Origin: Phyllobates terribilis
Lineage: Eukaryota
NCBI RefSeq assembly: GCF_046119375.1
Contig: NW_027362764.1
Coordinates: forward strand, 57,412,001-57,476,000
Direction: 5' to 3'
Length of the DNA stretch: 64,000 nucleotides
The translations under genes were made by a program, and so were the position numbers. The notes beneath the pieces are model-generated. The model searched no databases and was not told the origin of the DNA. It saw only the letters and a program-made list of their open reading frames with translations. The stretch's first letter is position 1. The number at the start of each line of letters is the position of its first letter. Below are positions 8,495 through 59,522 of the stretch, one piece after another.

Positions 8495-11400
8495 CTGAGA
8501 AATAAGGGGTGAAGAAATGTCACATCGACTGAGAAAATCCAAAATGATGGAGCGCATGCACACAGGGCCGTATACACACAAGGAGACTTGCACAAAACCA
8601 CAACTCTCACTTGTCATATTGACAGCGCTGCAGCCAATCAGTGAGCTCAGCCACTCAAAGCCACCAAGCTCTGTTATTGTCTGCAGAGCTGTCGACGTGA
8701 CGTCTGCACTGAATGTAAGGTTGGTTACCAACAGTGTTATACATGTGCAACGTGACATTGAGCGTTGTGAAATGCGTGTGCCATCTCCTACAGCTCTGGG
8801 ATAAGGCGCTGACTGCCACTTATCTCTCCGGATATAAATTATCCACCGCAGGCCGCCACCGTACACTTTTATCGCTGTAAATGCAGCAGTAGTTAAAGGA
8901 TGGCCACAATACCTGTGCTGGGAATTCACAGTGGACTGTGGGGAATCAAAGCCAGATCGGGAGCGACAGGACGAAAGCCTCTGGTCCCCGTACATGTCCA
9001 TACTGCCGGCCGGATGATACGGGGAATCCGTCCTCACCTCATTCCCTGCGTGGGATGTAATCGTCAATGTTACTGGCAATTTATAAAAAGACAAAGTGAT
9101 ATAATGCGAAAACGCAATGTACCACTATAAACACCAGACCGCCCAAATGTTCTGTTACTATCGTATGTGAATTACCAAACATGGCTGTATATAGAGGCGC
9201 AGGCTCCTCGCCAGGAGGAGGATTATGTTACCCAGTACAAGTGAATTGATCTCTTTCTACTGCATGTTTTATAGGGTCCCTTTCTACCACATAAAGGGAA
9301 GGAGATGGGATCTGACCTGAGCCCTCCTTCCCCACTGACCTCTTTTATGCTAGTACCACATAAAGGGAAAGCGATGGGATCTGACCTGAGCCCTCCTTCC
9401 GCACTGACCTTTCTTATGCTACTACCACATAAAGGGAAAGCGATGGGATCTGACCTGAGCTCTCCTTCCCCACTGACCTCTTTTATGCTAGTACCACATA
9501 AAGGGAAAGCGATGGGATCTGACCTGAGCCCTCCTTCCGCACTGACCTTTCTTATGCTACTACCACATAAAGGGAAAGTGATGGGATCTGACCTGAGCCC
9601 TCCTTCCCCACTGACCTCTTTTATGCTAGTACCACATAAAGGGAAAGCGATGGGATCTGACCTGAGCTCTCCTTCCCCACTGACCTCTTTTATGCTAGTA
9701 CCACATAAAGGGAAAGCGATGGGATCTGACCTGAGCCCTCCTTCCGCACTGACCTTTCTTATGCTACTACCACATAAAGGGAAAGCGATGGGATCTGACC
9801 TGAGCCCTCCTTCCCCACTGACCTCTTTTTATGCTACTACCACATAAAGGGAAAGCGATGGGATCTGACCTGAGCCCTCCTTCCCCACTGACCTCTTTTT
9901 ATGCTACTACCACATAAAGGGAAAGCGATGGGATCTGACCTGAGCCCTCCTTCCCCAATGACCTCTTTTATGCTACTACCACATAAAGGAAAAGCGATGG
10001 GATCTGACCTGAGCCCTCCTTCCCCACTGACCTCTTATGCTACTACCACATAAAGGGAAGGCGATAGCCGACCTGAGCCCTCCTTCCCCACAGACCTCTT
10101 TTATGCTACTACCACATGTAGGGAATGCGATAGGATCTGACCTGAGCCCTCCTTCCCCACTGACCATTTTTATACTAGTACCACATAAAGGGAAGGCGAT
10201 GGGATCTGACCTGAGCCCTCCTTCCCCACTGACCTCTTTTATGCTACTACCACATAAAGGGAAAGTGATGGGATCTGACCTGAGCCCTCCTTCCCCACTG
10301 ACTTCTTATGCTACTACCACATAAAGGGAAGGCGAAAGGATCTGACCTGAGCCCCCCTTCCCCACTGACCTCTTTTATGCTACTACCACATAAAGGGAAA
10401 GTGATGGGATCTGACCTGAGCCCTCCTTCCCCACTGACCTCTTTTATGCTACTACCACATAAAGGGAAGGCGATAGCTGACCTGAGCCCTCCTTCCCCAC
10501 TGACCTCTTATGCTACTACCACATAAAGGGAAAGTGATGGGATCTGACCTGAGCCCTCCTTCCCCACTGACCTCTTTTATGCTACTACCACATAAAGGGA
10601 AGGCGATAGCTGACCTGAGCCCTCCTTCCCCACTGACCTCTTATGCTACTACCACATAAAGGGAAAGTGATGGGATCTGACCTGAGCCCTCCTTCCCCAC
10701 TGACCTCTTTTATGCTACTACCACATAAAGGGAAGGCGATAGCTGACCTGAGCCCTCCTTCCCCACTGACCTCTTATGCTACTACCACATAAAGGGAAAG
10801 TGATGGGATCTGACCTGAGCCCTCCTTCCTCATTGACCTCTTTTATGCTACTTTTCCCTCCCGTGCAGCTATATTTTGCAGAGCTACCAGACCTAGTCTT
10901 ACCTAGGATTTGGCCAAATCCATTGCGGTTTGCGGTTCCTGCAGCAGGACTTATCGCTCGCTGCCAGCGTCTCACAAGAAACTTCATCCTGAATGAGGGA
11001 TATTAACATAAGAAATAAGTAGCAGAGTTCTGGAAGTACAAATAGGAGTTTCCTTGCCAATGTTATCATGCAGCTCAATGCATTACCTGGATATCGCTAT
11101 TGCTACACGAGCAGCAGAACGGAAGCGAGTAAAGGCCCTGGAGTGCTTAGTAATGACCTCCAGGTCAGTGTAGGACGGCTGCCCACCCATCCTGGCGATC
11201 AGCACCAGCGTGGCCTCCTCACACTCCTGGAACCCTCCCAGCAGAAGGAGGAGATACTTCTTCTGGTACACCAAGGCTTTCCTAAAGCTCTCCGACCGCA
11301 GGTACTTTCCATACACTCTCTGCAAGAAGGATATGGAGCTGGTATGAGCTAAGCGATACCCATATTGTACGCACATACCCCGTATGTATAATGATCTGTA

Positions 11401-14400: not shown

Positions 14401-17400
14401 ATACCAAGGGTAGCCACCAGATGGCAGAATACTACCAAGGAATAATGATAACCGGTATGTGTAGGCACATACATACACACATTATATATACAGTACAGAC
14501 CAAAAGTTTGGACACACCTTCTCATTTAAAGATTTTTCTGTATTTTCATGACTATGAAAATTGTACATTCACACTGAAGGCATCAAAACTATGAATTAAC
14601 ACATGTGGAATTATATACTTAACAAAAAAGTGTGAAACAACTGAAAATATGTCTTATATTCTAGGTTCTTCAAAGTAGCCACCTTTTGCTTTGATGACTG
14701 CTTTGCACACTCTTGGCATTCTCTTGATGAGCTTCAAGAGGTAGTCACCGGAAATGGTCTTCCAACAATCTTGAAGGAGTTCCCAGAGATGCTTTGCACT
14801 TGTTGGCCCTTTTGCCTTGGGTTCAGGTCTGGTGACTGTGGAGGCCAGGTCATCTGGCGTAGCACCCCATCACTCTCCATCTTGGTCAAATAGCCCGTAC
14901 ACAGCCTGGAGGTGTGTTTGGGGTCATTGTCCTGTTGAAAAATAAATGATGGTCCAACTAAACGCAAACCGGATGGAATAGCATGCCGCTGCAAGATGCT
15001 GTGGTAGCCATGCTGGTTCAGTATGCCTTCAATTTTGAATAAATCCCCAACAGTGTCACCAGCAAAGCACCCCCACACCATCACACCTCCTCCTCCATGC
15101 TTCACGGTGGGAACCAGGCATGTAGAGTCCATCCGTTCACCTTTTCTGCGTCGCACAAAGACACGGTGGTTGAAACCAAAGATCTCAAATTTGGACTCAT
15201 CAGACCAAAGCACAGGTTTCCACTGGTCTAATGTCCATTCCTTGTGTTCTTTAGCCCAAACAAGTCTCTTCTGCTTGTTGCCTGTCCTTAGCAGAACTTA
15301 GAACTCTGTGTGGCATTGACCTGGTCTCTAATCTGAGCTGCTGTTAACCTGCGATTTCTGAGGATGGTGACTCGGATAAACTTATCCTCAGAAGCAGAGG
15401 TGACTCTTGGTCTTCCTTTCCTGGGGCGGTCCTCATGTGAGCCAGTTTCTTTGTAGCGCTTGATGGTTTTTGCAACTGCACTTGGGGACACTTTCAAAGT
15501 TTGCCCAATTTTTCGGACTGACTGACCTTCATTTCTTAAAGTAATGATGGCCACTCGTTTTTCTTTACTTAGCTGCTTTTTTTCTTGCCATAATACAAAT
15601 TCTAACAGTCTATTCAGTAGGACTATCAGCTGTGTATCCACCAGACTTCTACACAACACAACTGATGGTCCCAACCCCATTTATAAGGCAAGAAATCCCA
15701 CTTATTAAACCTGACAGGGCACACCTGTGAAGTGAAGACCATTTCCGGTGACTACCTCTTGAAGCTCATCAAGAGAATGCCAAGAGGGTGCAAAGCAGTC
15801 ATCAAAGCAAAAGGTGGCTACTTTGAAGAACCTAGAATATAAGACATATTTTCAGTTGTTTCACACTTTTTTGTTAAGTATATAATTCCACATGTGTTAA
15901 TTCATAGTTTTGATGCCTTCAGTGTGAATGTACAATTTTCATAGTCATGAAAATACAGAAAAATCTTTAAATGAGAAGGTGTGTCCAAAGTTTTGGTCTG
16001 TACTGTATATATANNNNNNNNNNNNNNNNNNNNNNNNNNNNNNNNNNNNNNNNNNNNNNNNNNNNNNNNNNNNNNNNNNNNNNNNNNNNNNNNNNNNNNN
16101 NNNNNNNNNNNNNNNNNNNNNNNNNNNNNNNNNNNNNNNNNNNNNNNNNNCAATTCTGCAAGTTACATATATAAAGATGTGGTGCAATGTAATGCACAAA
16201 AAGTAAAATCAATACTGAAAAAAATATAAATACATTATAATCGGACATACTTCAAAAAATAATAATAGACCGTGTTACCACATCAGCCTCCACCTCAGAC
16301 CCCAATGTGCGTTTTGACCCTACTTATATATATCCACAAAGTTAATTACAATGCAATTCTGCAAGTTAGATGTGGTGACACAGTCTATTATTTTTTGGGG
16401 TATGTCTGATTATAATGTACTTATATTTTTTCACTGCTGCTTTTACTTTTTGTGTATTACACTGCACCAAATCTTTATAAATCTAACTTGCAGAATTGCA
16501 CTATAATTAACTTTGTAGATATATATATATACCTGTACATACCGGTTATCATTTCTTGCTAGTAGTATTCTGCCAATTGGTGGCTACCCTTGGAATTGTA
16601 ATCTTATTTTCATTATTTTGTGTCTCTCATTGGCCTCTCCTGCTCCTCCTTCATTGTTTCTTAATTTTGCTATCAACTTTTAGATTTATATTGTGCAGTT
16701 GAGTATTTCAATAAAACATTTATTATGTATATATAGATTTGTCTGATTCTTTTAATTAAATTGGAGTAACACTTATATAATATTAGGCTTTTTCTGTGTG
16801 CTCTTATCTATATTGGAATTACTTTTTGGATTATAGGCTTATATCAATAGAATATAAACTGATGTATCTGTAAGAAGAATCATGATAGGTCGTAATCTGA
16901 TTATGGTCCTGATTATGGTCCAGAAACTCAATACCCAATGGTTGTAAAGGGATAAGCTGGCAAAGGCCACTTCATGACTGGCGCAGGTCGTGCACTATCC
17001 AACCTTATGGCCCAATATGGCTGTCAAGTGAAAAAGAAACCCCGCAGGGGGCGATCTTGAGTGCCAGAAGTGCTAAATATGGGAATAAGACATTAAAATG
17101 TGAGATGAGCAGAAGAATATTTCCCATATCTATATCAAATGGATGGCCGGAGGTCTATGGTTGTCCCCTAAAAATGCAGTTTAATTGAAAGTCAGCACAG
17201 TTTACGGAGGGTAAAGCCCCCGTCTCACATAGCGAGATCGCTGCTGTGTCACGGTTTTGGTGGCGCAACAGCGACCTCACCAGCGATGTCGCTATGTGTG
17301 ACACTTTGCAGCGATCAGGCCCCTGCTGTGAGGTCGCTGATCGCTGCAGAATGTCCTGGACCTTTTTTTGGTCGTTGCTCTCCCGCTGGTCAGTATACAT

Positions 17401-32400: not shown

Positions 32401-35400
32401 AAAGTGAACTTCTACAAGACATGGAGGCCACCATATTGCTGGCCGACCTCACAATTCTATAAAGTACACACAGTGACTGTCTACCATGTCTACAAATGGA
32501 TGGGATTTTCCAGTCTTGCCTGAGCCACAGGATAGGTGAAAACTTACTGAGAGGTTTGACTCCTGGGTCCTCTATAGACTCAGAAATGCCCCATTCATGT
32601 CAACAGGATTGCCGGAGATGCCAAGTATACAGCTCGCCTTTCTCGGACATTTCCATAAAAAATGAATGGGTTTGGACAACGCTCCATTCTAACGGGATAT
32701 TTTAATTCCTTGTTCTTGGGAATAGTCGGGATAATTGAGGATAAACACCCAGCTTTCAGCAAGTTATAACCTATGCCGAAATTTGACTGCACTTGTAAAT
32801 AGACCCTTACAATCAGTTTGAGACCGTCAGAGCGGCAGCAATGATTCTGGGAGTAAGTATGGGTTATTTTTGTCTTTTATAAACATCCCAACACAATGGT
32901 AACTGAAATCCACTTTAATGGTAAGCAGGGGCAAAACTAAAGAAAATGCAAAGGCAGCAGCTGCAACCCAGTCCCTGGTGCCCAACGAGGCCCCTCTGCA
33001 ACATATGAAGACACCAGTGGCACAAAACATACATTTTGCATTGGGGACGAATATTTTCAAGTATCGGTTCTAGAACCTGGCATCGTACATCAGCAAATAG
33101 GACCCCACTTCCAATTTATAATACTTCACCGGTCATTAGTGCATGCTATATTCAGTGCCAGCATTTTTACTATAAAGGTAAAGCAGCGATCATCCCCCAC
33201 CATTAGCTCCTCCTTCAGTTTCTCCGCCATCTCTCTGTAATGGCACAGCTCTTCTTTGGCAGCCGTTGCTTCTGCTTTAGTAATGTGCAGCGCATTTTCC
33301 AGATCAGTCACAGTGTTGTCCTCAGACTTTAGAATAATTCCCTGTGGATAGGTAGAAGCCTCAAATCGTATAAACTGTATACTTTATGCGATGACAATTT
33401 AAAGGGCGTGCAATCATTTAAATAAAAACCAAATACTGAAGAATTTTGAAAATATTCACTAAAAATCTCTTACTTTTAGGTTTCTACAATTTGCATGCAC
33501 AACTATATGTCTCCATGGCTACAGACTACAAACAAACCTTTTGTAGTCGGATTTTGCAGTCAATGCTATTGAAAAGACCATTCTTGCAGAAATATATCTG
33601 TATAGGTACAGTACAGACCAAAAGTTTGGACACACCTTCTCATTTAAAGATTTTTCTGTATTCTCATGACTATAAAAATTGTACATTCACACTGAAGGCA
33701 TCAAAACTATGAATTAACACATGTGGAATTATATACTTAACAAAAAAGTGTGAAACACCTGAAAATATGTCTTATATTCTAGGTTCTTCAAAGTAGCCAC
33801 CTTTTGCTTTGATGACTGCTTTGCACACACTTGGCATTCTCTTGATGAGCTTCAAGAGGTAGTCACCGGAAATGGTTTTCACTTCACAGGTGTGCCCTGT
33901 CAGGTTTAATAAGTGGGATTTCTTGCCTTATAAATGGGGTTGGGACCATCAGTTGTGTTGTGCAGAAGTCAGGTGGATACACAGCTGATAGTCCTACTGA
34001 ATAGACTGTTAGCTGCTTTTTTCTTGCCATAATACAAATTCTAAGTAAAGAAAAACGAGTGGCCATCATTACTTTAAGAAATGAAGGTCAGTCAGTGCAA
34101 AAAATTGGGAAAACTTTGAAAGTGTCCCCAAGTGCCGTTGCAAAAACCATCATGCGCTACAAAGAAACTGGCTCACATGAGGACCGCCCCAGGAAAGGAA
34201 GACCAAGAGTCACCTCTGCTTCTGAGGATAAGTTTATCCGAGTCACCAGCCTCAGAAATCGCAGGTTAACAGCAGCTCAGATTAGAGACCAGGTCAATGC
34301 CACACAGACTTCTAGCAGCAGACACATCTCTTCAACAACTGTTAAGAGGAGACTTTGTGCAGCAGGCCTTCATGGTAAAATAGCTGCTAGGAAACCACTG
34401 CTAAGGACAGGCAACAAGCAGAAGAGACTTGTTTGGGCTAAAGAACCATTTCCGGTGACTACCTCTTGAAGCTCTTCAAGAGAATGCCAAGAGTGTGCAA
34501 AGCAGTCATCAAAGCAAAAGGTGGCTACTTTGAAGAACCTAGAATATAAGACATATTTTCAGTTGTTTCACACTTTTTTGTTAAGTATATAATTTCACAT
34601 GTGTTAATTCATAGTTTTGATGCCTTCAGTGTGAATGTACAATTTTCATAGTCATGAAAATACAGAAAAATATTTAAATGAGAAGGTGTGTCCAAACTTT
34701 TGGTCTGTACTGTATATAAAAATATTCTGATTTTGCAGTCAACATTATTCCCTTCCTTCTACTGTCACATAACTGCAGGTCTTTATTATATAGTTATGTG
34801 ACAGTAGAAAGAAGGGAACAACATTGACTGCAAAATCCGACTATTTAAATATATAATATATGTATATGTACACACACACATAAATATACATACACATATA
34901 TATATATATATATATTTCTTTTCACTAGCCTGTAATCAGAAAAAGCGAACATTTACCTGGGATAGTGCAGAGTCCATCACTCTTGATTCGCTTTCTGTCT
35001 GGTTCATGTCCGTTTTCCTTGTATAATTTTCCAAGACTTGCCGCAGGTCATGGAGTTGTCTCTCCTTCTCGTCCGCCTGTTGATTTGCGATATTAACCTG
35101 TTCACGTTCTACCTGTAGCTGCTCATGGAGGTCGGATAGCTGCTTCTCCAACTCTAAAAGTCTCATAGAGAGCGCTGATAACTTTGACTCGGTTTCCTCC
35201 TCCAAGGAAGGCTTAGCAAAAAGAGGCTGCATTTTTCTGTCTTCCTCATCCAGTCTGACAGGGCCATCATCTTCATGCAATTGTTTAGTGTGCACCTGAA
35301 TGGCTTTAAGCTGGGCGTCACTCACAAGAGCTGCAGCCACTTTTTCCCTGAGTGTGTCCTCCATGGCCACCACTATTTGACCATGTTGGTCGCTTTCAGC

Positions 35401-38400
35401 TTTCACCTGCTCTTTCAGCGTTTCAATCTCTTCTAAATACAGCAAAATTTCCAAGTCTCTCTCTTTAATAACGTTTTGCACTTCCTGTAACTGATCCTCC
35501 ATGGTGTCTATTGTGATCTGCATGGTCTCCTGTACGGAGGTGAGCAAAACTTGGTTGGCCAAGTGCTGTGCGGTCTGGTCTCTCACAGCTTCCTCCACAT
35601 CACCATGGTCATACGTTTCATCTCCACTGGACTTGTCTTGCAAAGACTCTTGTCCGTCTACACTGTCCTCAGCCATTGGCAATTGTCGTGAGTCTTGCTT
35701 TACACTTAGTGAATTGGTCACAGTGGTATCACCATTCATCAGCAGTCTTGATGCCTTCTCCTCATCTCTAAAATGCTGTGCGTTACTGTCTGACTTTGCT
35801 TTAGAGGACATCTTTAGTTCAGCTTCAGCTAATTTTTGGTTGAGCGTTTCAATCACATCGTGTAGCTGCTCAATCTCCATTTTTTGCTTGTTTAACTGTT
35901 CCGACTCTGAATCCTTCTGTTCTATAACTTTCTGAAGTTCTTGCAACCGTGACTCTATGTCATGGGTACTAGTTTGTGTGGTCTCCTCTGTGGATGTCAC
36001 CATCACTTGCTTTTGCATCTGTATTTGTTCTTTATCCCTTTCGTGAAGCTCAACTTTAGAGGCTTTTTCAATCTTCCTTTCTGTATGTTCTTTATGCTCT
36101 TTTAGCCTTTCTAGTTCTTCCTTTAAAGCAGCCATTTCCATACGCTTCTCTTCAAGCTCTCCTCTTAAGTCACTTTTACCATCACACTCTTCCTGCAAGT
36201 GTTTGTGCTCTGTGATTTTTGGTTTATGGCTCATTTGACTTTCCGCATCCTTCCTTGTAGCACCATAATCCTTCTCTTCTTTTGATAAGTCTTTGATCAC
36301 CTTCTTCAGCTGTGCGATCTCTTGTGCTTGCAGGTTAAGCAGGTCTTCCTGATTCTCACATTGTAACAATTCTATATCCTTCAGATTTATGATGTTTTGA
36401 AGTTCTTCTATGTGCAACTCCATATCCTTTGTAGTGGTCTCCTCCATGGAGGGCGACACTTCCAGACGAGGTGCCTCCCTTTTGCTTAATTTTGGTTTTA
36501 GACCCATAACTTCACGTCCTTCAGAATTTCTAGACTCGGCCCGTTCGTTTTCATCCTCAGATCTTTGAAACAGTTTTAGTTTTGCCAATTCTTCTTCCAA
36601 CAATGCCATCTCTATTCTCGTTGTCTCCAGCTCAGCCTTTAATTGAATGACCTTAGCATCATCTTCACCAACTTTTTGCAGAGCAACTTCATTTTCTATA
36701 AGATCTTGGTGGTATGTCTGACTTAACCCATCTTTTGTTTTGATGTTTCTTATCTTTTTTAGCTCCTCTTTTAACAAAGCTATTTCCACTTTTGTCCTCT
36801 CAAATTCTTCCTTAAAGGCATTTCCACCATCTGAATTTTTCTCGTTGTCCTCACTTTCGGTGCTTCTTTTACTTTCTCTATCCTTTGTGGCGACTTCCGA
36901 ATCAATTAAAATCTTCTTTTCTTTCGAGAAGTCCTCCTGCACCTTCTTCAACCGCTCAATCTCGTTCTTCTGTTGGTCCAACAAGTCTTCCAGATTCGTA
37001 TACCGCAACAATTCTACATCTTTCTGATCTATAAGACTTTGAAGTTCTTGTATCTGTAACTCCATATTCTTCATTGCAGTGGTGGTCTCCTCTTTGGGTG
37101 TAAACATATCTGGAGAAGCTACAGAGGGATCTCTTGCCTTTTGGGACAAAGTTTGTTCTGGTTCAGCCAAGGTAGGACCTTCTATGCTTGTTTCAGATTC
37201 CTCGTTGTTCTCGATAGGCATTTGCAACAATTTGTGCTTGTCCAGCTCTTTTTCCAGTTGGGTCATCTCGATTCTAGTCTTCTCTAGCTCTGCTTTTATT
37301 CTAACCAGCTCACCCTCATCTTGGTCTACCCTCTGCAGAAGAACTTCAGAGTTTTCTATTAAAGTTTCACTTTGACCTTCCTTGATCTTCTTCTCTCCAT
37401 CTGCCAATCTCTGCTGTAAATCTCTGACCACATCATTTAGACGTTCAATTTCCTGATTTTCAAGCAGGGCTGAAGGGTGATTTGTGAATTGCAGGAGCTT
37501 TGTATCTTTCTCCTGGATGCTTGTCTGCAGATCTTGCACATGAATCTCAAGTCGATGTATTGCATCCTTGGAAGCCTCTTGCACAGATACAAGCAAGGCT
37601 TCGACTGCCAAATACTGAGCTGTTTTTGCTCGTAATTCCTCAGTTAATCTATCGATGTTGACTGTGGCATTTCTGTCCTGCCTCAGGAGATTTTCTGACG
37701 GCTCTTTGGTTCTAACCATGTCCTTGTTTGTAGGTGCCTCATCTGTATCACTTTCTTCAGTGTTTGGAGATAGAATGAGATTTTCAGGACAAAGCTGATG
37801 TCTAAAAGTTTCCATTTCTTTATATTCAAGTTCAAGCTGAAGCCTTTTGACTTCTTCTTTCAGGTCTTTCATTGCTAGGGTTTGTTCTTCCAGCATTATA
37901 ATTTGCTCATCCTTCATTTTAATAATGCCCATCAGTTCTTCCAACTTGGACTCCATATTCCGAAGAGTAACCTGAGCCTCCTCCGATAGAGTCTCAGATA
38001 ATTTATTCAACGGTATTGTGGACATCTCGTTCCTCTGTCCATTATTATTAGTGCTCTCATGCCTCTCCGCCATATTGTTCTCTGATGGTTTGCTTGCACT
38101 CACGTTCACATCTTCCATGACAGCAAACGGTGCATCTCCTTGACCAAATAATGGCTGTAACATTTCCTTCCCGGCAGCAGTGTCTTCAAATTGGTGTTTA
38201 TCAGCAAAGTCCATTGCAACTTTTTGCTCTATACGAGTCAACTCCTCTTGTAGTTTTTCTATCACTTCATTGAGCTTTTCTATCTCCTCTTCGTTGCTCT
38301 TCTTCAGTCGCTCCTGGTCACTTTTTAGGCATTTTATCTGACTTTTGTAAGCCTTCATTTTTTCATTATTCTCTTCAATCACCTGAAAGAGTAAAGATAA

Positions 38401-41400
38401 AAAAAATATACCAATGATTTTGTTTTTATTTCCAACACAAAAAAATATAACAACCGCTATAAGCAGGTCATGCCTACAAGACGGTGAGATGACTAAGCCT
38501 ATGAGCCCTGAAGTGCTTCAGAAAAAACATAGCTCTAAAGGATAATCTTAGAAATTAATCAAATAAACTATAGATATTATTGCTCTCAAATTCCTCTCAG
38601 TCTTCAGTATATTTTAAATTTTCCTGAAACAAAACAGTCTTGTATTAAACTTGCGGGGAATATAGGGGTTAAGTTCCTACTGTTCTACTGTTAGAGAGGG
38701 GCATGGCCAATAGGTGATTTTTTTCTACAGCAGACAGGGCAGAGGAGGGGAGACTTGCTGGAGCTAATTTTCTTACAACCAGATACAAGAAAGTGAGGAT
38801 GAGAGGGGTGGAGACAGCAAACAAAGGAGACTCCTGTTGAAGCTATTTTTCTTACAACCAGACACAAGAAGTGAGGAAGAGAGGGATGAAAGTGGCAGAC
38901 CGCTGTCTTACTATCAGATACTAGACAGTGTTGTCTCAATCCCTCTCCTCCTCAGACAGATGAGGCTCCAGCTGCATCCAGTAGACTTAGAGCAGGATAG
39001 ACAGTCAAGAGCAGAGGGTTGGGTGTGGAGGCTTCTGTTGCAGCCAGTTGTCTTACAGTCGGACACAAGACAGTGAGGTGCAGTGGGGTGGAGATATCAG
39101 ACAGAAAAGGCTCCAAGTAACTTACAGTCAGGTACAAGACACTGAGAAAGAGAGGTGTGGAGGTAGCAAAAAGAAGTGGCACCTACTGCAGCCAGTTGTC
39201 TAACAGTCAGACACAGAACAGTGAGATAAAGAGGTGCAGAGACAGCAGAGGCTCCTGCCTGCATCCAGTAGACTTACAGCCAGATACAAGACAGTGAAGA
39301 GCAGAGGGTTGGGTGTGGAGTGGCAGCTTCTGCTGCAGCCAGTTGTCTTACAGTCGTACACAACACAGGGAGGAGCAGTGGGGTGGAGATATCAGACAGA
39401 AGAGGCTCTGACTGCATCCAAGTGACTTACAATCAGACACAAGACATTGAGGAAGAGAGGTGTGGAGGTGGCAGATAGAGATGGCACCTGCTGTAGCCAG
39501 TTGTCTAACAGTCAGACACAGGACAGTGAGGAAAAGAGGTGCGGAGACAGCAGAAGCTACTGCTGCATCCAGCTAACTTAAAGCCGGATAAAAGGTATTG
39601 AGGAGCAGAGAAAGGTGTAGGTGGCAGATAAAGGGGACACCTGTTGCTGCCAGTTGTCTTAAAACCAGACAAAAGAGAGAGAAGTCTGGAAAGCTGATTT
39701 TCTGGGAAATCCATATAGACAATTCTTGTATATATTTCTCAGTTTAACATATTTTGCAGCATGAGGCAAAAAAGGGTAAAAAATGAGACTGCAAGATATA
39801 GAATAAATTCTATACTTTCTATGTTCAGTCTTCCTTTAGCATTTGCCCCCTACCAGTGTTATCTGTCTGACCTGGAAAGAAGTGTCAGCTGAGCAGCCCT
39901 CCCCACAACGATCAACAGATCTCATTTGTTAGCTGGGAGAGACCTGTCACTCATAGATTAGCAAACTGGAGAGCAGCCAAGCTGACACATCTCTACAAAA
40001 ATTATATAGCAGATAAGATTACTTCATATGTGTTTTCTAGGACATAGACATATTGAAGGACTGTCCTTAGATAGGCCATCGATATCAAGTCGGTGTGGGT
40101 CCGTAAAGACGTGTTGAATGACAACTAGTATATGATGGAATTGCAAAGAGCTGCATGGCCAATAGAAATTGGTAAACTAGAGTCTCGAGGACCCTTCAAT
40201 TAGCGGATTGGTGCAGATGCCAGGAGTCAAACCCCCATTGATCTGATAATGATAGTTTATCCAAGTATAGCTCTGCAATATTGTACTCCAGGAAAGCCCC
40301 TTTAAGGGCTCAACAACTAATCAGAAAAACCCAGCCTGTAAGCAGACAGCATGCTTTATTGGCATCAGGGACCCCCACACATGGGATGGGCGATGCTTTT
40401 TTTGCAGCAGTCTACAGATGATTACAAATATGGGAGATGGCACTAGCGGGACAATACCTTGTTATCTGTCGCAGCCTCCAGTTGTGCCTGCAGTTTTCCT
40501 ATCTGTTCGTTGAGCAGGTCGATTTCCTGGTCTTTCAATAGTAATAATTCCTCTGATTTTCCAGGTTTGGGAAGAAGAGGTTTAGAAGAGAAGGTTCCTG
40601 GATGTTCTTGCTGTGTGTTTTCAACTTCATCCTAAACACATAAAGTAGATGTTTAGACTTCAAACCCATACCCATCAAATGAAAGGGTCATTCACACAAT
40701 TAAAAATTGCAATTCGACCACTGGGACCTTCACTTGAAATGTGCTCTGAGAAAGACCGATGAGTAGCCACCACTCCAATCATCTCCTATGGAACTGCTGG
40801 ACACACCAGAGTACAGTGCTCAGCTTTTTCCAGCAGTCCCATAGACAATAAATTCAATGACATTCACCATGATTGACCTCCGCTCCATTAACTGGGTCTC
40901 TAACAGAGGTCCGTTCTCGGGATCACTGAGGTTCCCAGTGATCAGACCTTCACGATCTGAGAATTATCATCTATTCTGTACTTTTAATGATGGGAATAAC
41001 CCTTTAATAATGACTTTTACCTGCAAAATAATAAGAAACCCGTACACAATGCAGAATTATCTCACCTTTAGCACTTTATTCTCTTGCTCCAGTTCCTGCA
41101 GACGGGTTTCAGCCTCCTTCCTCTGGATCTCCAGCTGCATGTGGAGCTGCTGAACCTCCTCATTCTTATTCTCCAGCTCTTCCCTGAACTGTTCCAGCTG
41201 CTCCACCAGGTTTGTGATCTGCCGGACAAAAATGAAGGAATGTAAAGCTGTGATACAGGATTTCTGACAGTTAAGCCGACAGATCTTCAGGCCCGAAATA
41301 TCCTTATAACTGTGATTATCTAATGTGTATGGCTGAATACTGGTGGAGGTTGGAGCATCCTAATGTGCAAAGTGGCTTAATTCGGACGCGTCTGTTTCAA

Positions 41401-47400: not shown

Positions 47401-50400
47401 TTATACTCATAAATGTGATGCTTGTCTATCTCCACCGCTCTCGTCCTTCCTATATGTGTCTCCCATATATTCCCCCCTATGCGCCCTCACCTGGCTCTTG
47501 GTTACCCATAGCAACCAATCACAGCACAGTTTCCATTTTACCAGAGCTGTTTAAAAAATGAAAGCAGAACTGTGACTGGTTGCTATGGGCAACAGAGACA
47601 GTTTCTATTTCTATACGGTTGTATACATAGGCAGGTGGCGGCCATTATTCTATCATATTAAATATGGACAGATATATTCATGCTTTTAATGATAAAAACC
47701 ATCGCTGTGTTAGTGGCTGGTGCTCCTTCGCTCGCTCTGCCCTGTCTGTCACGCAGTCGGTGAGGAGGATTGCTTTTCCTCTTTGGTAGGAGCGGGCGCA
47801 CAGTGTCCATATCCACCGTGTGCGGTGAGGACAGTACAATCACACATGCGCTGCGTCATGGTGGGATAAGAGGAAGAAACCAGCTACAGAACTTGAAGTC
47901 TTGAGCGCGAGCAGATTGGCTGCAGCGTTGTCGACATGACGTCAACGCTGCAGCCTAACAGACACCGGGGCAGCGGTGGAAATTCAGCGCTGGACCAGGG
48001 GAGGGGGGAGTATAGCTCCATTTATTTATTTGTTACTAGTAATGGAGCTTATAGTAAAAAAAAAAAATTCTGAAAGGGACTGGTCAATCCCATATACTGA
48101 AGCCATGAAGAACAGGGGCTCAGGAGCCCTTTCTACTAATTGGTGCTGGCCCGAACAACCGATTAATGTCGTTTGTGGAAAAATCCCTTTAACTAACCTA
48201 ACACTCTCAGGACCAAAATCTACCCCCATCACTGACACCACTTCCGATGGAAAAAGGTTCAAATAATCATCACATACAATCTCCAACGCGCCTCGCCTCC
48301 TCACTACTGCTTTACTGGGAGATCTGTCCACTTCCAAAATGGTTTAGGAGGATTAGNNNNNNNNNNNNNNNNNNNNNNNNNNNNNNNNNNNNNNNNNNNN
48401 NNNNNNNNNNNNNNNNNNNNNNNNNNNNNNNNNNNNNNNNNNNNNNNNNNNNNNNNNNNNNNNNNNNNNNNNNNNNNNNNNNNNNNNNNNNNNNNNNNNN
48501 NNNNNNNNNNNNNNNNNNNNNNNNNNNNNNNNNNNNNNNNNNNNNNNNNNNNNNNNNNNNNNNNNNNNGTCAGATATACCAAACTGGGACATCAATAGTG
48601 AATTTAGTCGAATAATCTAGATCGGAGTATGAGGTTAGTAGTCGGTAAGTTGTTCACTTACATCTAGGAAGCGACGCGTCTTCTCCAGTTGTTTTTCCAG
48701 AGCAAGGTTCTTCTGTCGGAGATCTTCAAGGTCAGCATTCTTCTCCTGCTCCAAATCTGTATACCGGTTCACCTGCTCCTCCAGCTCCACCTCCAGAACC
48801 TTAACGTGTTTGTGGAGGTCTCCGGAGTCCTTCTCCGCCTGACGCTGAACCTCGATCTTCTCCATCAGCAGCTTCTCTGTCTCTTCCAGCAGCTCTGTTC
48901 AGGGAGGTGACATACAACCCCATCAATCCCTATTCAAAAAGGTGACGTCCTTCAAATCAGTAGAATCTCCATAGCCCCAATGGCAGGAAAAACATTGGAT
49001 GGAGTTGAAGTGTTGGAGGTTTTTGATTTTTTCAAGCAAGTGACGCCCAAATCTGTATGAACTGGGGCGTGTGTCTAGGTATATATATGGCAAGCGTAGC
49101 CGAGAACTTGTTTTTGGTAATAAAAAAAAATGCAACATAAATTATATATTAAGAGGTTTTACCCAATATAATATAATTTGTAGCACTGACAAATGTATGT
49201 TATATATGGCAGGAGTTATATAATTAAGTCTAAATGCAGATGAACCATGCTCATGGCATTCACTTTACTGCTGACCTGGCCTACTTCTATTCTCTATAGC
49301 TGTATTCGAGCAGGCCACCCTAATAACTACTAACGTGGTGCCCTCAAATGACAATACAAGACTTAAAGGGGTTGTCCAAGATTGATAAAACAGGGCTTTC
49401 TTTCCGAAATAGCGAAAACTATTTTTCACAACTGTTGGGACGTTCATTAAGAAGCACGGTATATAAGTCGATGGCTGCAGCATATAAAGGAAAACCTGCT
49501 GACTGGTTCCCTTTAAAGCTGAAGTAACAAATTCACAAATTTTTTTCTTTTCTTCTTTTTTTTTTTTTTTAATTTATACATTTTTTTTTTATTACTTTTG
49601 ATTGTGTAAAATTTTTCCTAAACACTCTCCAAAGATCCAATGTTTTTCCGCTTCATGATGAAAGCCGGGACGTGAGCGTCCAGTGCACCGGGTGCGGTTA
49701 GCCATACAAGTATATAATATATCAATACTTTTTTTCACGCTTTGGAGTTTGGAACAAACTGCAAAACTTTCACCGGGTGCTGTTATATCAGGGAGAGAGA
49801 AACCGTCACAAAGGTGATTTAGACGTATGAAAAGAAAAAAAATCACCGAAAAAAAACAAACAAATGCAATTTTCTTAAAAATCGCTGCCTGCCTATTACC
49901 ATCATCTTAAGTGAGCGATCATCTGCGATGCAATACAATATAGTGCCAAAATGAGGCGATCAATCAAATCTGGAAGTTTGGAAAGAGGGAGGTGGGGTAA
50001 GGTAGTGGGGTAGATAGATTTCCGAATCAAGGAATAAAGGGGGGATAAGTCACTAGGGGAGCTGTGATTGGATGATGGATAAGATGATGGTTGAGATGCG
50101 TGTTAATGAGAGGTAGAGAGTTTAACCCCTTGCTAGCAAAAGGGGGGGTTTGGAGGACCACGAGAGGAGTGGTTAGGCACAGGAGTTGGCAATTAAGCAA
50201 GCGAGGATTAGTGCAAGGTATCAAGGAGCCCAAAAAGCCAGAGGATTAGTTCAATCCCAAATCGTAGCCATTAAAAACACCAGATTAGAGGTTGGCCATG
50301 CGGGAGGTACAAACAAACCTTCTTTGGGAGCTGCAACGACTGCAGCGTCTACTAAGCCTGGGAGAATAGAGAACAAAACAAATGCAGTGTAATTCACATG

Positions 50401-53291: not shown

Positions 53292-53506
53292 CTGGAAATA
53301 GCAATGAGGGGACAGAACTGTGAGTGGAATCTAAGGAGCAAGAAAGTCTATGCAGCAAATATAAAAAATTACATTCACAGATAAACAGAAATCTGTTTAT
53401 ATCAAGTAAATCCAAAAATTGCAAATTACCCACAAGAGTTAATTTAGTTTATACTTCAGGAATTTTGCTAAAATGTGAATGAATGTATCTGAACACCATC
53501 AGGTGT

Positions 53507-55777: not shown

Positions 55778-56358
55778 NNNNNNNNNNNNNNNNNNNNNNN
55801 NNNNNNNNNNNNNNNNNNNNNNNNNNNNNNNNNNNNNNNNNNNNNNNNNNNNNNNNNNNNNNNNNNNNNNNNNNNNNNNNNNNNNNNNNNNNNNNNNNNN
55901 NNNNNNNNNNNNNNNNNNNNNNNNNNNNNNNNNNNNNNNNNNNNNNNNNNNNNNNNNNNNNNNNNNNNNNNNNNNNNNNNNNNNNNNNNNNNNNNNNNNN
56001 NNNNNNNNNNNNNNNNNNNNNNNNNNNNNNNNNNNNNNNNNNNNNNNNNNNNNNNNNNNNNNNNNNNNNNNNNNNNNNNNNNNNNNNNNNNNNNNNNNNN
56101 NNNNNNNNNNNNNNNNNNNNNNNNNNNNNNNNNNNNNNNNNNNNNNNNNNNNNNNNNNNNNNNNNNNNNNNNNNNNNNNNNNNNNNNNNNNNNNNNNNNN
56201 NNNNNNNNNNNNNNNNNNNNNNNNNNNNNNNNNNNNNNNNNNNNNNNNNNNNNNNNNNNNNNNNNNNNNNNNNNNNNNNNNNNNNNNNNNNNNNNNNNNN
56301 NNNNNNNNNNNNNNNNNNNNNNNNNNNNNNNNNNNNNNNNNNNNNNNNNNNNNNNNNN
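55778..56358. other. Assembly gap
   Basis: Run of N. Confidence 1.
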
Positions 56359-59300
56359 GAGGGGGGGGGAAGAGGGGGGGAAAGAGGGGGGGAAGAGGGG
56401 GGGAAAGAGGGGGGGGAAAGAGGGGGGGAAAGAGGGGGGGAAAGAGGGGGGGAAAGAGGGGGGGGGAAGAGGGGGGGGGAAGAGGGGGGGGAAGAGGGGG
56501 GGAAAGAGGGGGGGAAAGAGGGGGGGAAAGAGGGGGGGAAAGAGGGGGGGAAAGAGGGGGGGAAAGAGGGGGGGAAAGAGGGGGGGAAAGAGGGGGGGAA
56601 AGAGGGGGGGAGAGAGGGGGAGAGAGAGGGGGAGAGAGAGGGGGAGAGAGAGGGGGAGAGAGAGGGGGAGAGAGAGGGGGGGCAGAGAGCGAGCGCGAGG
56701 GGGGCAGAGAGCGAGCGCGAGGGGGGCAGAGAGCGAGCGCGAGGGGGGCAGAGAGCGAGCGCGAGGGGGGCAGAGAGCGAGCGCGAAGGGGGCAGAGAGC
56801 GAGGGGGGCAGAGAGCGAGCGCGAAGGGGGCAGAGAGCGAGAGCGAGGGGGGCAGAGAGCGATCGCGAGGGGGGGGCAGAGAGCGAGCGCGAGGGGGGGC
56901 AGAGAGCGAGCGCGAGGGGGGGCAGAGAGCGAGCGCGAGGGGGGGCAGAGAGCGAGCGCGAGGGGGGGCAGAGAGCGAGCGCGAGGGGGGGCAGAGAGCG
57001 AGCGCGAGGGGGGCAGAGAGCGAGCGCGAGGGGGGGCAGAGAGCGAGGGGGGGCAGAGAGCGAGGGGGGGCAGAGAGCGAGGGGGGGCAGAGAGCGAGGG
57101 GGGGCAGAGAGCGAGGGGGGGCAGAGAGAGAGCGCGAGGGGGGGCAGAGAGAGAGCGCGAGGGGGGGCAGAGAGAGAGCGCGAGGGGGGGCAGAGAGAGA
57201 GCGCGAGGGGGGACAGAGAGAGCGCGAGGGGGGACAGAGAGAGAGCGCGAGGGGGGACAGAGAGAGAGCGCGAGGGGGGACAGAGAGAGAGCGCGAGGGG
57301 GGACAGAGAGAGAGCGCGAGGGGGGGGCAGAGAGAGCGCAAGGGGGGTGCAGAGAGAGCGCGAGGGGGGGCAGAGAGAGCGCGAGGGGGGGCAGAGAGAG
57401 AGAGCGCGCGAGGGGGGCAGAGAGAGAGCGCGCGAGGGGGGCAGAGAGAGAGAGCGCGCGAGGGGGGCAGAGAGAGAGAGCGCGCGAGGGGGGCAGAGAG
57501 AGAGAGCGCGCGAGGGGGGCAGAGAGAGAGAGCGCGCGAGGGGGGCAGAGAGAGAGAGCGCGCGAGGGGGGCAGAGAGAGAGAGCGCGCGAGGGGGGCAG
57601 AGAGAGAGAGCGCGCGAGGGGGGCAGAGAGAGAGAGCGCGCGAGGGGGGCAGAGAGAGAGAGCGCGCGAGGGGGGCAGAGAGAGAGAGCGCGCGAGGGGG
57701 GCAGAGAGAGAGAGCGCGCGAGGGGGGCAGAGAGAGAGAGCGCGCGAGGGGGGCAGAGAGAGAGAGCGCGCGAGGGGGGCAGAGAGAGAGAGCGCGCGAG
57801 GGGGGCAGAGAGAGAGAGCGCGCGAGGGGGGCAGAGAGAGCGCGCGAGGGGGGCAGAGAGAGAGAGCGCGCGAGGGGGGCAGAGAGAGAGAGCGCGCGAG
57901 GGGGGCAGAGAGAGAGAGCGCGCGAGGGGGGCAGAGAGAGAGAGCGCGCGAGGGGGGCAGAGAGAGAGAGCGCGCGAGGGGGGCAGAGAGAGAGAGCGCG
58001 CGAGGGGGGCAGAGAGAGAGAGCGCGCGAGGGGGGCAGAGAGAGAGAGAGCGCGCGAGGGGGGCAGAGAGAGAGAGCGCGCGAGGGGGGCAGAGAGAGAG
58101 AGCGCGCGAGGGGGGCAGAGAGAGAGAGCGCGCGAGGGGGGCAGAGAGAGAGAGCGCGCGAGGGGGGCAGAGAGAGAGAGCGCGCGAGGGGGGCAGAGAG
58201 AGAGAGCGCGCGAGGGGGGCAGAGAGAGAGAGCGCGCGAGGGGGGCAGAGAGAGAGAGCGCGCGAGGGGGGCAGAGAGAGAGAGCGCGCGAGGGGGGGCA
58301 GAGAGAGAGAGCGCGCGAGGGGGGGCAGAGAGAGAGAGCGCGCGAGGGGGGGCAGAGAGAGAGAGCGCGCGAGGGGGGCAGAGAGAGAGAGCGCGCGAGG
58401 GGGGCAGAGAGAGAGAGCGCGCGAGGGGGGCAGAGAGAGAGAGCGCGCGAGGGGGGCAGAGAGAGAGAGCGCGCGAGGGGGGCAGAGAGAGAGAGCGTGC
58501 GAGGGGGGCAGAGAGAGAGAGCGCGCGAGGGGGGCAGAGAGAGAGAGCGCGCGAGGGGGGCAGAGAGAGAGCGCGCGAGGGGGGCAGAGAGAGAGAGCGC
58601 GCGAGGGGGGCAGAGAGAGAGAGCGCGCGAGGGGGGCAGAGAGAGAGAGCGCGCGAGGGGGGCAGAGAGAGAGAGCGCGCGAGGGGGGCAGAGAGAGAGA
58701 GCGCGCGAGGGGGGCAGAGAGAGAGCGCGCGAGGGGGGCAGAGAGAGAGAGCGCGCGAGGGGGGCAGAGAGAGAGAGCGCGCGAGGGGGGCAGAGAGAGA
58801 GAGCGCGCGAGGGGGGCAGAGAGAGAGAGCGCGCGAGGGGGGCAGAGAGAGAGAGCGCGCGAGGGGGGCAGAGAGAGAGAGCGCGCGAGGGGGGCAGAGA
58901 GAGAGAGCGCGCGAGGGGGGCAGAGAGAGAGAGCGCGCGAGGGGGGCAGAGAGAGAGAGCGCGCGAGGGAGGCAGAGAGAGAGAGCGCGCGAGGGGGGCA
59001 GAGAGAGAGAGCGCGCGAGGGGGGCAGAGAGAGAGAGCGCGCGAGGGGGGCAGAGAGAGAGCGCGCGAGGGGGGCAGAGAGAGAGAGCGCGCGAGGGGGG
59101 CAGAGAGAGAGAGCGCGCGAGGGGGGCAGAGAGAGAGAGCGCGCGAGGGGGGCAGAGAGAGAGAGCGCGCGAGGGGGGCAGAGAGAGAGAGCGCGCGAGG
59201 GGGGCAGAGAGAGAGAGCGCGCGAGGGGGGCAGAGAGAGAGAGCGCGCGAGGGGGGCAGAGAGAGAGAGCGCGCGAGGGGGGCAGAGAGAGAGCGCGCGC

Positions 59301-59522
59301 GAGGGGGGCAGAGAGAGAGAGCGCGCGAGGGGGGCAGAGAGAGAGAGCGCGCGAGGGGGGCAGAGAGAGAGAGCGCGCGAGGGGGGCAGAGAGAGAGAGC
59401 GCGCGAGGGGGGCAGAGAGAGAGAGCGCGCGAGGGGGGCAGAGAGAGAGAGCGCGCGAGGGGGGCAGAGAGAGAGAGCGCGCGAGGGGGGCAGAGAGAGA
59501 GCGCGCGCGAGGGGGGCAGAGA
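56359..59522 (+). repeat. G/A-rich simple-sequence array, about 3.2 kb
   Basis: Units progress from GGGGGGGAAAGA to GGGGAGAGAGAG to GAGGGGGGCAGAGAGCGAGCGC to GAGGGGGGCAGAGAGAGAGAGCGCGC. T is almost absent. Confidence 0.97.

Follow-up and report, generated by a model that had tools for sequence, protein, structure and literature searches.

The stretch of DNA analysed here (the window: 64,000 nucleotides of Phyllobates terribilis, NCBI RefSeq assembly GCF_046119375.1, contig NW_027362764.1, positions 57,412,001 to 57,476,000) carries exons of the gene for AKAP9 on its minus strand. This protein, also named AKAP350, AKAP450 or CG-NAP, is a scaffold of the centrosome and Golgi, where it organises PKA, phosphodiesterase and microtubule-nucleating complexes. 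With exons located individually by tblastn, i.e. as separate segments rather than as a joined spliced model, we see 26 minus-strand segments that lead from window position 53292 down to 8368 in the same order as amino acids 2034–4954 of Hyperolius AKAP9. All named matches in protein searches are AKAP9 (the others being unnamed or hypothetical) and none is named pericentrin. The four exons that concern us are as follows.

40452..40631 (ends approximate), minus strand: preceding AKAP9 exon, located by tblastn
34957..38382, minus strand: the whole AKAP9 exon under study, defined by its open reading frame, splice sites and orthology (3,426 nt, 1,142 codons, phase 0 at both ends)
33198..33326 (ends approximate), minus strand: following AKAP9 exon, located by tblastn
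11086..11352, minus strand: AKAP9 exon for the PACT centrosome-targeting domain (Pfam PF10495, E 2.6e-23, 82.6 bits against a cut-off of 25), downstream of the 1,142-codon exon

The closest relatives of the exon are dendrobatid AKAP9 sequences, from Dendrobates and Ranitomeya, at 83–85% identity over its length; this identity, the collinearity of the flanking exons with frog AKAP9 and the PACT domain downstream together confirm the gene as AKAP9, as the initial annotation had named it. The same annotation had described a stop-free exon of 1,142 codons, which is what remains when the minus-strand open reading frame (the sole one to reach 150 aa in the 33–40 kb part of the window) is trimmed to its splice sites at 38382 and 34957. 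These sites are canonical, with a polypyrimidine tract and CAG acceptor at one end and a donor reading CAG then GTAAAT across the border at the other. The frame holds no stops where its base composition predicts ~76 (P ~1e-34), the other five frames holding 27–97, and there are no N letters inside the exon. Its position in the protein, ~aa 2,330–3,500, rules out an identification as the large 5' exon of AKAP9. A Pfam search of the exon finds no family, returning a chance match only (E 0.11).

Two types of module recur along the exon, and are listed here from its N-terminal end together with the conserved elements that frame them.

38194..38382, minus strand: N-terminal helix or ‘N-anchor’ (aa 1–63), conserved; AlphaFold2 helix with pLDDT 68–88
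37795..37983, minus strand: module A1 helix (aa 134–196), from motif, alignment and AlphaFold2
37381..37671, minus strand: hydrophobic pre-A2 helix and module A2 (aa 238–334), from alignment and AlphaFold2
37225..37362, minus strand: module B1 helix (aa 341–386), from motif, HMM and AlphaFold2
36904..37092, minus strand: module A3 helix (aa 431–493), from motif and AlphaFold2; its pre-helix is decayed and contains prolines
36742..36822, minus strand: module B2 helix (aa 521–547), from motif, HMM and AlphaFold2
36529..36666, minus strand: module B3 helix (aa 573–618), from motif, HMM and AlphaFold2
36277..36438, minus strand: module A4 helix (aa 649–702), from motif, tree and AlphaFold2
36040..36177, minus strand: module B4 helix (aa 736–781), from motif, HMM and AlphaFold2
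35743..36021, minus strand: module A5 helix (aa 788–880), from motif, tree and AlphaFold2
35383..35601, minus strand: pre-A6 helix and module A6 (aa 928–1000), the ancestral copy, from tree and alignment
35290..35361, minus strand: second predicted PKA-RII docking site of AKAP9 (aa 1008–1031, core KVAAALVS), from conservation
34960..35205, minus strand: C-terminal conserved helix of the exon (aa 1060–1141), from conservation and AlphaFold2

A pattern search allowing up to 4 mismatches to the motifs originally proposed finds motif A six times (exon aa 143, 278, 440, 654, 809 and 961) and motif B four times (aa 363, 524, 582 and 740), in agreement with the copy numbers and positions first put forward; regular expressions, MAFFT and HMM all recover these six A and four B units, in frame and within one uninterrupted exon. 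At the DNA level the A cores form a single direct-repeat family (53 nt, 60–75% identity) reaching from 35450–35502 to 37904–37956, which matches the interval 35440–37960 given earlier for the repeats, and A4 and A3 share 159 nt at 72% identity. Self-comparison, suggested at the outset as a check for internal duplication, is positive: the best off-diagonal Smith-Waterman alignment scores 590, as against 225 ± 22 for 30 shuffles. A blastp search of the exon against itself returns the identity match only, and a tandem repeat finder, run from trinucleotide to 500 nt, calls nothing of module scale, an outcome to be expected of copies so diverged in DNA. The module-A HMM also matches exon position 1, i.e. 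the N-anchor, in all species; this helix is 58–93% identical across vertebrates.

AlphaFold2 places long helices on the modules (block-mean pLDDT ~70–88) and gives values below 50 for the spacers between them, which both prediction and composition indicate to be disordered, acidic and rich in Ser, Thr and Pro. Ser and Thr make up 17% of these low-confidence spacers versus 8% of the helical parts, and Pro 4.8% versus 0; the net charge of the spacers is -46. The acidic Ser/Thr spacers of the initial annotation are thus seen in the composition, and the structure prediction that it advised returns helical modules separated by disordered linkers.

Beyond the last module, conservation of the RII core extends from shark to frogs; all 43 sequences carry it exactly once, at 19 aa into the C-anchor, and the site is 93–99% identical among hyloids. 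RII-binding domains of human AKAP350A/AKAP9 have been reported at 1440–1457 and 2551–2564, and the site in the window corresponds in position to the second of these (preprint 10.1101/2024.07.02.601773). Among internal elements only the RII site is more conserved than the pre-A2 helix, which is 83% identical across other hyloids. The hydrophobic pre-A pattern (TAQxLA...LLxSxQE) is present in 1–3 copies in every frog except a doubtful Leptobrachium model, with none found in non-frogs at ≤3 mismatches, and AlphaFold2 predicts helix for both pre-A2 and pre-A6. Scanned with a consensus pattern for AKAP helices, the exon matches only at pre-A2 and pre-A6; shuffled exons average 1.5 matches (P 0.42), and the pattern misses the accepted RII site. 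Hydrophobic moments over 18 aa are 0.25–0.28 for pre-A2 and pre-A6 and 0.27 for the RII site, the exon's top helices being far higher, and searches of PDB sequences with these elements return chance matches only. We doubt that the frog-only pre-A2/pre-A6 helix is a working docking site for the PKA regulatory subunit, or for another protein with a dimerisation/docking domain; were it to dock, frog AKAP9 would be multivalent as well as longer, its valency and reach tuned by the copy number of each lineage.

Comparison with other vertebrates used AKAP9 relatives gathered by a representative search and two region searches with full-length frog proteins, a sample made up of frogs, caecilian, amniotes, shark and Astyanax. 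The distance from the start of the exon to the RII-site region is 207–218 aa in caecilian, two turtles, alligator, bird, mammal, tuatara and shark, versus 484–1,567 aa in 32 of 33 sampled frog species (995 aa in the window). Profile HMMs likewise count 3–11 A modules in 32 of the 33 frogs, the upper end being approximate, with six A and four B in the window and three A in Xenopus; non-frog tetrapods have one of each, whilst shark and Astyanax escape the B profile. The repeats are absent from two Ensembl models of Leptobrachium, both doubtful, and no other frog is in the single-unit state. Between the same splice borders, an amniote contig has an exon of 345 aa, the window one of 1,142 aa and a contig from a dicroglossid frog one of 1,303 aa. 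In the window the exon is lengthened 3.3-fold, and the stretch between its start and the RII site 4.6-fold. Total AKAP9 length (about 4,100–5,560 aa in frogs, about 3,800–4,050 aa in other vertebrates) tracks this interval with r = 0.975 and a slope of 1.04, frog and non-frog proteins being equally long on either side of it; essentially all of the extra length of frog AKAP9 is explained by the RII-site exon.

The human segment had been given as ~350 aa with one motif A, a description that fits every non-frog tetrapod tested (human itself lying outside the sample) as well as the 345-aa amniote exon. The proposed lineage-specific and roughly threefold lengthening holds in its magnitude, but its lineage must be corrected to the whole order Anura, with 3 to ~11 copies; among the vertebrates sampled, exons of similar length and repeat number are found elsewhere only in other frogs. 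Judged from the sequences compared, the expansion is frog-wide and old rather than specific to a species or family, although ‘frog-specific’ could mean frog plus salamander. An unnamed 355-aa Logan ORF, considered as a salamander sequence, groups with amniotes and was ruled out.

A tree of the modules sets out their history. The last, A6, falls in one group (100 SH-aLRT) with the lone module of caecilian and amniotes and the final module of each frog, and is thus identified as the ancestral copy. A1, A2 and A5 form cross-frog orthologue clades: orthologues of A1 occur in every frog but Ascaphus (97 SH-aLRT), and A5 groups with A5 of Bufo and Rhinoderma (98 SH-aLRT). A3 and A4 together make up a duplication clade confined to hyloids (98 SH-aLRT), and the window's six A modules match those of other hyloids one to one. 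Going by this tree, some of the non-ancestral modules arose before crown frogs and more were added in Neobatrachia. Conservation among other hyloids is 0.60–0.80 for A cores, 0.44–0.63 for B, 0.83 for pre-A2 and 0.93 for the RII site, compared with 0.24–0.61 (mostly ≤0.54) for spacers. Between paralogous cores inside the window, dN/dS is 0.2–0.8 where dS is estimable (22–54 codons each, dS from 0.5 to saturation), with 0.22 for A3 versus A4, the longest pair. Tree, hyloid conservation and these ratios all agree with the earlier description of the copies as old and diverged yet kept open.

We consider it highly probable that the exon records a frog-order, in-frame tandem expansion of a B–spacer–A unit within the AKAP9 RII exon, its copies under purifying selection and its RII site single. 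Other vertebrates show, from N-terminal helix to RII site, a single unit in which a disordered spacer links a B helix to a pre-A plus A helix. In frogs this unit of ~150–180 aa would have undergone tandem in-frame duplication within the exon, most likely through unequal recombination or replication slippage between copies; the first copies would predate the last common ancestor of living frogs, with internal copies added again, independently, in hyloid and ranoid frogs. Purifying selection would have kept the helices open whilst the spacers drifted. The duplicated unit leaves out the RII site, which remains single. The protein would thereby have gained ~780 residues in which long helices alternate with flexible acidic linkers, placed between the N-terminal two thirds of AKAP9 on one side and the RII site and C-terminal Golgi/centrosome targeting part on the other. 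Such an insertion is likely to act as a longer, segmented spacer arm, changing the distance and flexibility between parts of AKAP9, and the added helices may perhaps bind partners.

A possible, if rather unlikely, account of the same data is near-neutral growth of a tolerant linker, in which the added copies would be functionless and the frame open only since a stop would truncate an essential protein. The wide variation in A-module number among frogs, the fast-evolving spacers, the decayed pre-helices of A1, A3, A4 and A5 (some with prolines) and the uneven retention of B modules would all suit it; against this, helices are clearly more conserved than spacers (pre-A2 above all), the paralogue dN/dS values lie below 1, all six modules are one-to-one orthologous across hyloid families and, barring the two doubtful Ensembl models, no frog has returned to a single unit.

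We find it quite improbable that much of the exon's interior is missing from mature mRNA, either as an exitron or through alternative internal splicing that takes out whole units, to give a shorter protein. GenBank submitter isoforms of Ascaphus do lack one or two units (differing by 181 and 343 aa), but the RefSeq Ascaphus models retain the full interval, and Ascaphus units A2 and A3 are near-identical and could collapse in transcript assembly; the Ensembl models of Leptobrachium and one of Staurois also skip the interior, but homology-based gene builders can make a false intron from a lineage-specific insert. In addition, a frame of this length, so improbable by chance, is kept in 32 frog species, the modules are conserved with dN/dS below 1, and 20 of 20 annotated models from Dendrobates, two Ranitomeya species and Anomaloglossus retain the whole exon. 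That its length is an assembly artefact, or the exon a decaying pseudo-exon, is scarcely credible: repeats are prone to mis-assembly and other parts of the window do contain N gaps, but the exon itself is free of them, its copies are too diverged in DNA to mislead an assembler, it is collinear (within 8 aa) with three other dendrobatid assemblies and Anomaloglossus, and eight sequencing runs from two studies, which we guess to be RNA, contain 96–98% of its sampled words.

The frog-order tandem expansion is real, old and order-wide, yet an ordinary mode of gene growth. Since before living frogs diverged, one exon has set the difference in AKAP9 length, with 3 to ~11 modules by lineage, thus providing a natural series of graded scaffold-arm lengths within a single order, to which the laboratory model Xenopus belongs; swapping or deleting modules could probe the role of spacer length, or of the extra helices, at the centrosome and Golgi. 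It also carries a warning for annotation, as homology-guided models may excise the frog-specific interior as a false intron, which could be what lies behind the Leptobrachium Ensembl and Staurois models.

Orthologues with the expanded exon are already in the RefSeq annotation of relatives, and a literature search found no paper on the lengthening of this exon in frogs. AKAP9 of Dendrobates tinctorius (XP_073438077) and Ranitomeya imitator (XP_069585526) has the same exon, collinear over 1,142 aa, and its six A and four B modules lie where those of the window do; the window sequence is placed outside the group of Dendrobates and Ranitomeya but, relative to Anomaloglossus, within Dendrobatidae. 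Amniote and caecilian AKAP9 share the exon borders (seen in the amniote contig), N-terminal helix, last A module, RII core and C-terminal helix, but have one A and one B module, in a 345-aa exon, where the window has six and four in 1,142 aa. Proteins lengthened by tandem duplication within a coding exon include involucrin, through its repeats in primates, and titin, through its PEVK units. Frog AKAP9 resembles these in its serial in-frame duplication within one exon, its lineage-variable copy number and the greater divergence of its older copies; it differs in that the unit is a long helix-spacer-helix of a centrosome/Golgi scaffold, and in that its copies predate crown frogs and are individually orthologous across families.

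Between 33 and 40 kb of the window, the only long open frame lies on the minus strand and corresponds to a single exon of AKAP9 (AKAP350/AKAP450/CG-NAP), a scaffold of the centrosome and Golgi.

Features of the window (window coordinates)
38382..34957, minus strand: AKAP9 exon; 1,142 codons (3,426 nt), both ends in phase 0, N-free
35450-35502 and 37904-37956: outermost DNA repeats of the motif A core, bracketing the span of the initial annotation
37552-37662 (aa 241-277) and 35503-35616 (aa 923-960): hydrophobic helices preceding the second and sixth A modules (pre-A2, pre-A6)
11086-11352: PACT domain exon, E 2.6e-23
56362-59522: G-rich minisatellite, 3.2 kb, within an AKAP9 intron and immediately past the N gap at 55778-56358
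16014-16150, 48357-48568 and 55778-56358: N runs

Base composition predicts ~76 stops in the exon's frame and 0 are present (P ~1e-34), the remaining five frames carrying 27–97; the exon is bordered by a pyrimidine tract and CAG upstream, and by CAG/GTAAAT downstream. Two kinds of helix module recur along it: motif A at exon residues 143, 278, 440, 654, 809 and 961 (A1–A6), and motif B at residues 363, 524, 582 and 740 (B1–B4). At the DNA level the six A cores form a 53-nt direct-repeat family with 60–75% identity, and comparison of the exon protein with itself gives a top off-diagonal alignment of 590, against 225 ± 22 for shuffles. The stop-free exon of the initial annotation, with its six A and four B motifs, is thus recovered at the same positions; the DNA repeats and the self-comparison both agree with it.

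A Pfam search of the exon itself found no family. Its assignment to AKAP9 comes instead from the surrounding exons, the PACT domain and its dendrobatid matches: 26 tblastn segments (53292 to 8368) lie on one strand with it and are ordered as in frog AKAP9 proteins—exons being compared singly with reference proteins, with no joined protein model—and the exon is 83–85% identical, and collinear over its full length, to AKAP9 of Dendrobates tinctorius and two Ranitomeya species. In a tree built from the conserved parts, the window falls within Dendrobatidae but outside Dendrobates plus Ranitomeya, Anomaloglossus being more distant. In the frog protein, the exon occupies approximately residues 2,330–3,500. 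In the intronic minisatellite, 27 copies of a 12-nt unit come first and 112 copies of a 26-nt unit follow, the latter with runs of 6–7 G on the plus strand; the GC content is 0.60–0.66, with a GC skew of up to 0.66.

Using 15 hyloid and myobatrachid orthologues, AlphaFold2 models the exon at a low mean pLDDT of 57, as expected for such a protein. Long helices are predicted (block-mean pLDDT ~70–88) for an N-terminal helix, every A and B module, the RII site (the PKA-RII docking helix near the exon end) and a C-terminal helix; the segments between them fall below 50, contain all of the prolines, have twice the Ser+Thr of the helices and carry a net charge of −46, in keeping with the acidic Ser/Thr spacers and helical modules anticipated from sequence. 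Working along the exon, the order is N helix, A1, pre-A2 with A2, B1, A3, B2, B3, A4, B4, A5, pre-A6 with A6, RII site and C helix; the repeat unit itself runs from a B helix through a spacer to a pre-A helix, which continues into the A helix, and then a second conserved stretch. The N helix (38194-38382, exon aa 1-63) scores with the module A profile in every vertebrate tested, and an older, diverged half-copy of the unit may thus have been part of the ancestral exon already.

The helix near the exon end, with core KVAAALVS, is strictly conserved and aligns from shark to frogs. Human AKAP350A is reported to have two RII-binding domains, at 1440–1457 and 2551–2564 (preprint 10.1101/2024.07.02.601773); because the helix lies at ~residue 2,550 in one panel mammal, the exon is, on homology, the carrier of the second PKA-RII docking site of AKAP9. 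Its core occurs exactly once in 43/43 sequences, so the canonical PKA site has not been multiplied. Every frog except the Leptobrachium model also has 1–3 copies of a hydrophobic pre-A helix (TAQxLA...LLxSxQE), a pattern absent, at ≤3 mismatches, from the non-frogs of the 43-sequence set; the pre-A2 copy is conserved among hyloids almost as well as the docking site. Scoring the exon for RII-like helices with what we take to be the consensus pattern of the AKAP literature gave matches only at the pre-A2 and pre-A6 places, with shuffled exons averaging 1.5 and the accepted RII site unmatched; PDB sequence searches on the same idea returned chance matches only. We treat pre-A2 and pre-A6 as a lead: extra, putative RII-like helices.

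How far the exon has grown is seen from an AKAP9 panel, assembled by a representative search and two region searches using full-length frog proteins, of 33 frog species together with caecilian, turtles, alligator, birds, mammals, tuatara, a coelacanth fragment, shark and fishes; salamanders, lungfish and the human protein lie outside it.

Length from the exon's first residue to the conserved C-anchor, which begins 18 residues ahead of the RII core
Caecilian, two turtles, alligator, bird, mammal, tuatara, shark: 207–218 aa
Xenopus and Hymenochirus: 484–525 aa
Rhinophrynus: 550 aa
Spea and Pelobates: 627–713 aa
Ascaphus and Discoglossus: 743–924 aa
Myobatrachoids: 699–874 aa
Hyloids: 995–1,387 aa
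Ranoids: 977–1,567 aa
Window: 995 aa
Other dendrobatoids: 996–1,003 aa

Profile HMMs made from the window's own copies find a single A and a single B module in non-frog tetrapods, 3 to ~11 A modules in frogs, and six A and four B in the window; the B profile has no match in shark or Astyanax. In Astyanax mexicanus the same interval is 610 aa, yet with one A module and no B, which suggests an unrelated, independent insertion. Logan genomic contigs give the exon borders directly: an amniote exon starts (AG/GTG ATT) and ends (CAG/GT) as in the window and has 345 codons, and a dicroglossid frog exon with the same borders has 1,303. This makes the window exon 3.3 times as long as the unexpanded one, bearing out the roughly threefold lengthening first proposed and in line with the ~350 aa with one motif A first given for the human segment. 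Total AKAP9 length tracks the interval (r=0.975, slope 1.04; 37 full-length proteins), with near-equal means for frogs and non-frogs ahead of it (2,387 vs 2,371) and after it (1,361 vs 1,365); on these protein lengths, the extra length of frog AKAP9 is explained by one exon.

In a maximum-likelihood tree of 67 A modules (17 species, 94 columns; many forks open), the last module of every frog, window A6 included, groups with the single caecilian/amniote module (100 SH-aLRT), identifying the copy adjoining the RII site, by phylogeny, as ancestral. A1 forms a clade of all frogs minus Ascaphus (97) and A2 a neobatrachian one (97) with Pelobates alongside (89); A5 joins that of Bufo and Rhinoderma (98) and, more loosely, the penultimate modules of ranoids, Mixophyes and Pelobates; A3 and A4 sit in a clade limited to hyloids (98), and ranoids have multiplied their internal modules separately. 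All six window modules pair with the same-numbered Dendrobates modules, and for A1, A2, A5 and A6 the pairing extends to Rhinoderma and Bufo, whose A3/A4 fall in the same hyloid clade with a less clean match of number. As the module count is already four or five in Ascaphus and Discoglossus, several duplications are older than crown Anura, in line with the age first supposed; the later ones are, on this tree, lineage-specific, the window's arrangement dating to early hyloids. The near-identity of units A2 and A3 in Ascaphus points to recent duplication or gene conversion there. The initial description of the expansion as lineage-specific holds in that it is absent from the non-frogs sampled, but it is order-wide and copy-variable across frogs, not a property of this lineage alone.

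On inclusion of the exon in mRNA, the pointers are indirect: it is whole in 20/20 annotated models checked (Dendrobates tinctorius 9, Ranitomeya variabilis 4, R. imitator 5, Anomaloglossus 2), and eight runs from two studies, none recorded as RNA, contain 96–98% of its sampled words. In Ascaphus truei, RefSeq models retain the interval in full and some GenBank submitter models lack exactly one or two units (181 and 343 aa); the shorter models may reflect real internal splicing or collapse between the near-identical A2/A3. Two Ensembl Leptobrachium leishanense models and one Staurois parvus model skip an interior that their relatives have; these gaps could be false introns, a homology-guided builder having treated a lineage-specific insert as an intron.

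The sequence shows that a helix-spacer-helix unit was duplicated in frame, repeatedly, within one exon; the expansion is both old and conserved, and its copies presumably arose through slippage or unequal recombination between repeat units. Some 780 residues have been added upstream of the RII site. They would lengthen a segmented, flexible arm between the region termed microtubule inhibitory in human AKAP350A (1882–2182; preprint 10.1101/2024.07.02.601773) and the RII site together with the microtubule-promoting, Golgi and PACT regions of the C-terminus; such an arm could alter reach, spacing or partner number. The main functional rival is near-neutral growth of a tolerant linker. Identity between the window and eight other hyloids is 0.93 for the RII site, 0.83 for pre-A2, 0.82 for the N helix, 0.60–0.80 for A cores, 0.44–0.63 for B modules and 0.24–0.61 (mostly ≤0.54) for spacers, with invariant columns concentrated in the same better-conserved elements. 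The dN/dS comparison first suggested, computed inside the window only, gives 0.2–0.8 between paralogous cores where dS could be estimated (Nei-Gojobori; small samples), with dS from 0.5 up to saturation and the longest pair, A3/A4 (54 codons), at 0.22.

Neither AKAP9 nor this exon is new, and RefSeq already lists frog orthologues that share the exon; a full-text literature search for AKAP9 with Xenopus, anuran or duplication found no paper on the expansion. Set against that record, the expansion is an order-wide, copy-number-variable lengthening of a PKA-docking exon in a major centrosome/Golgi scaffold, present in tractable form in Xenopus.
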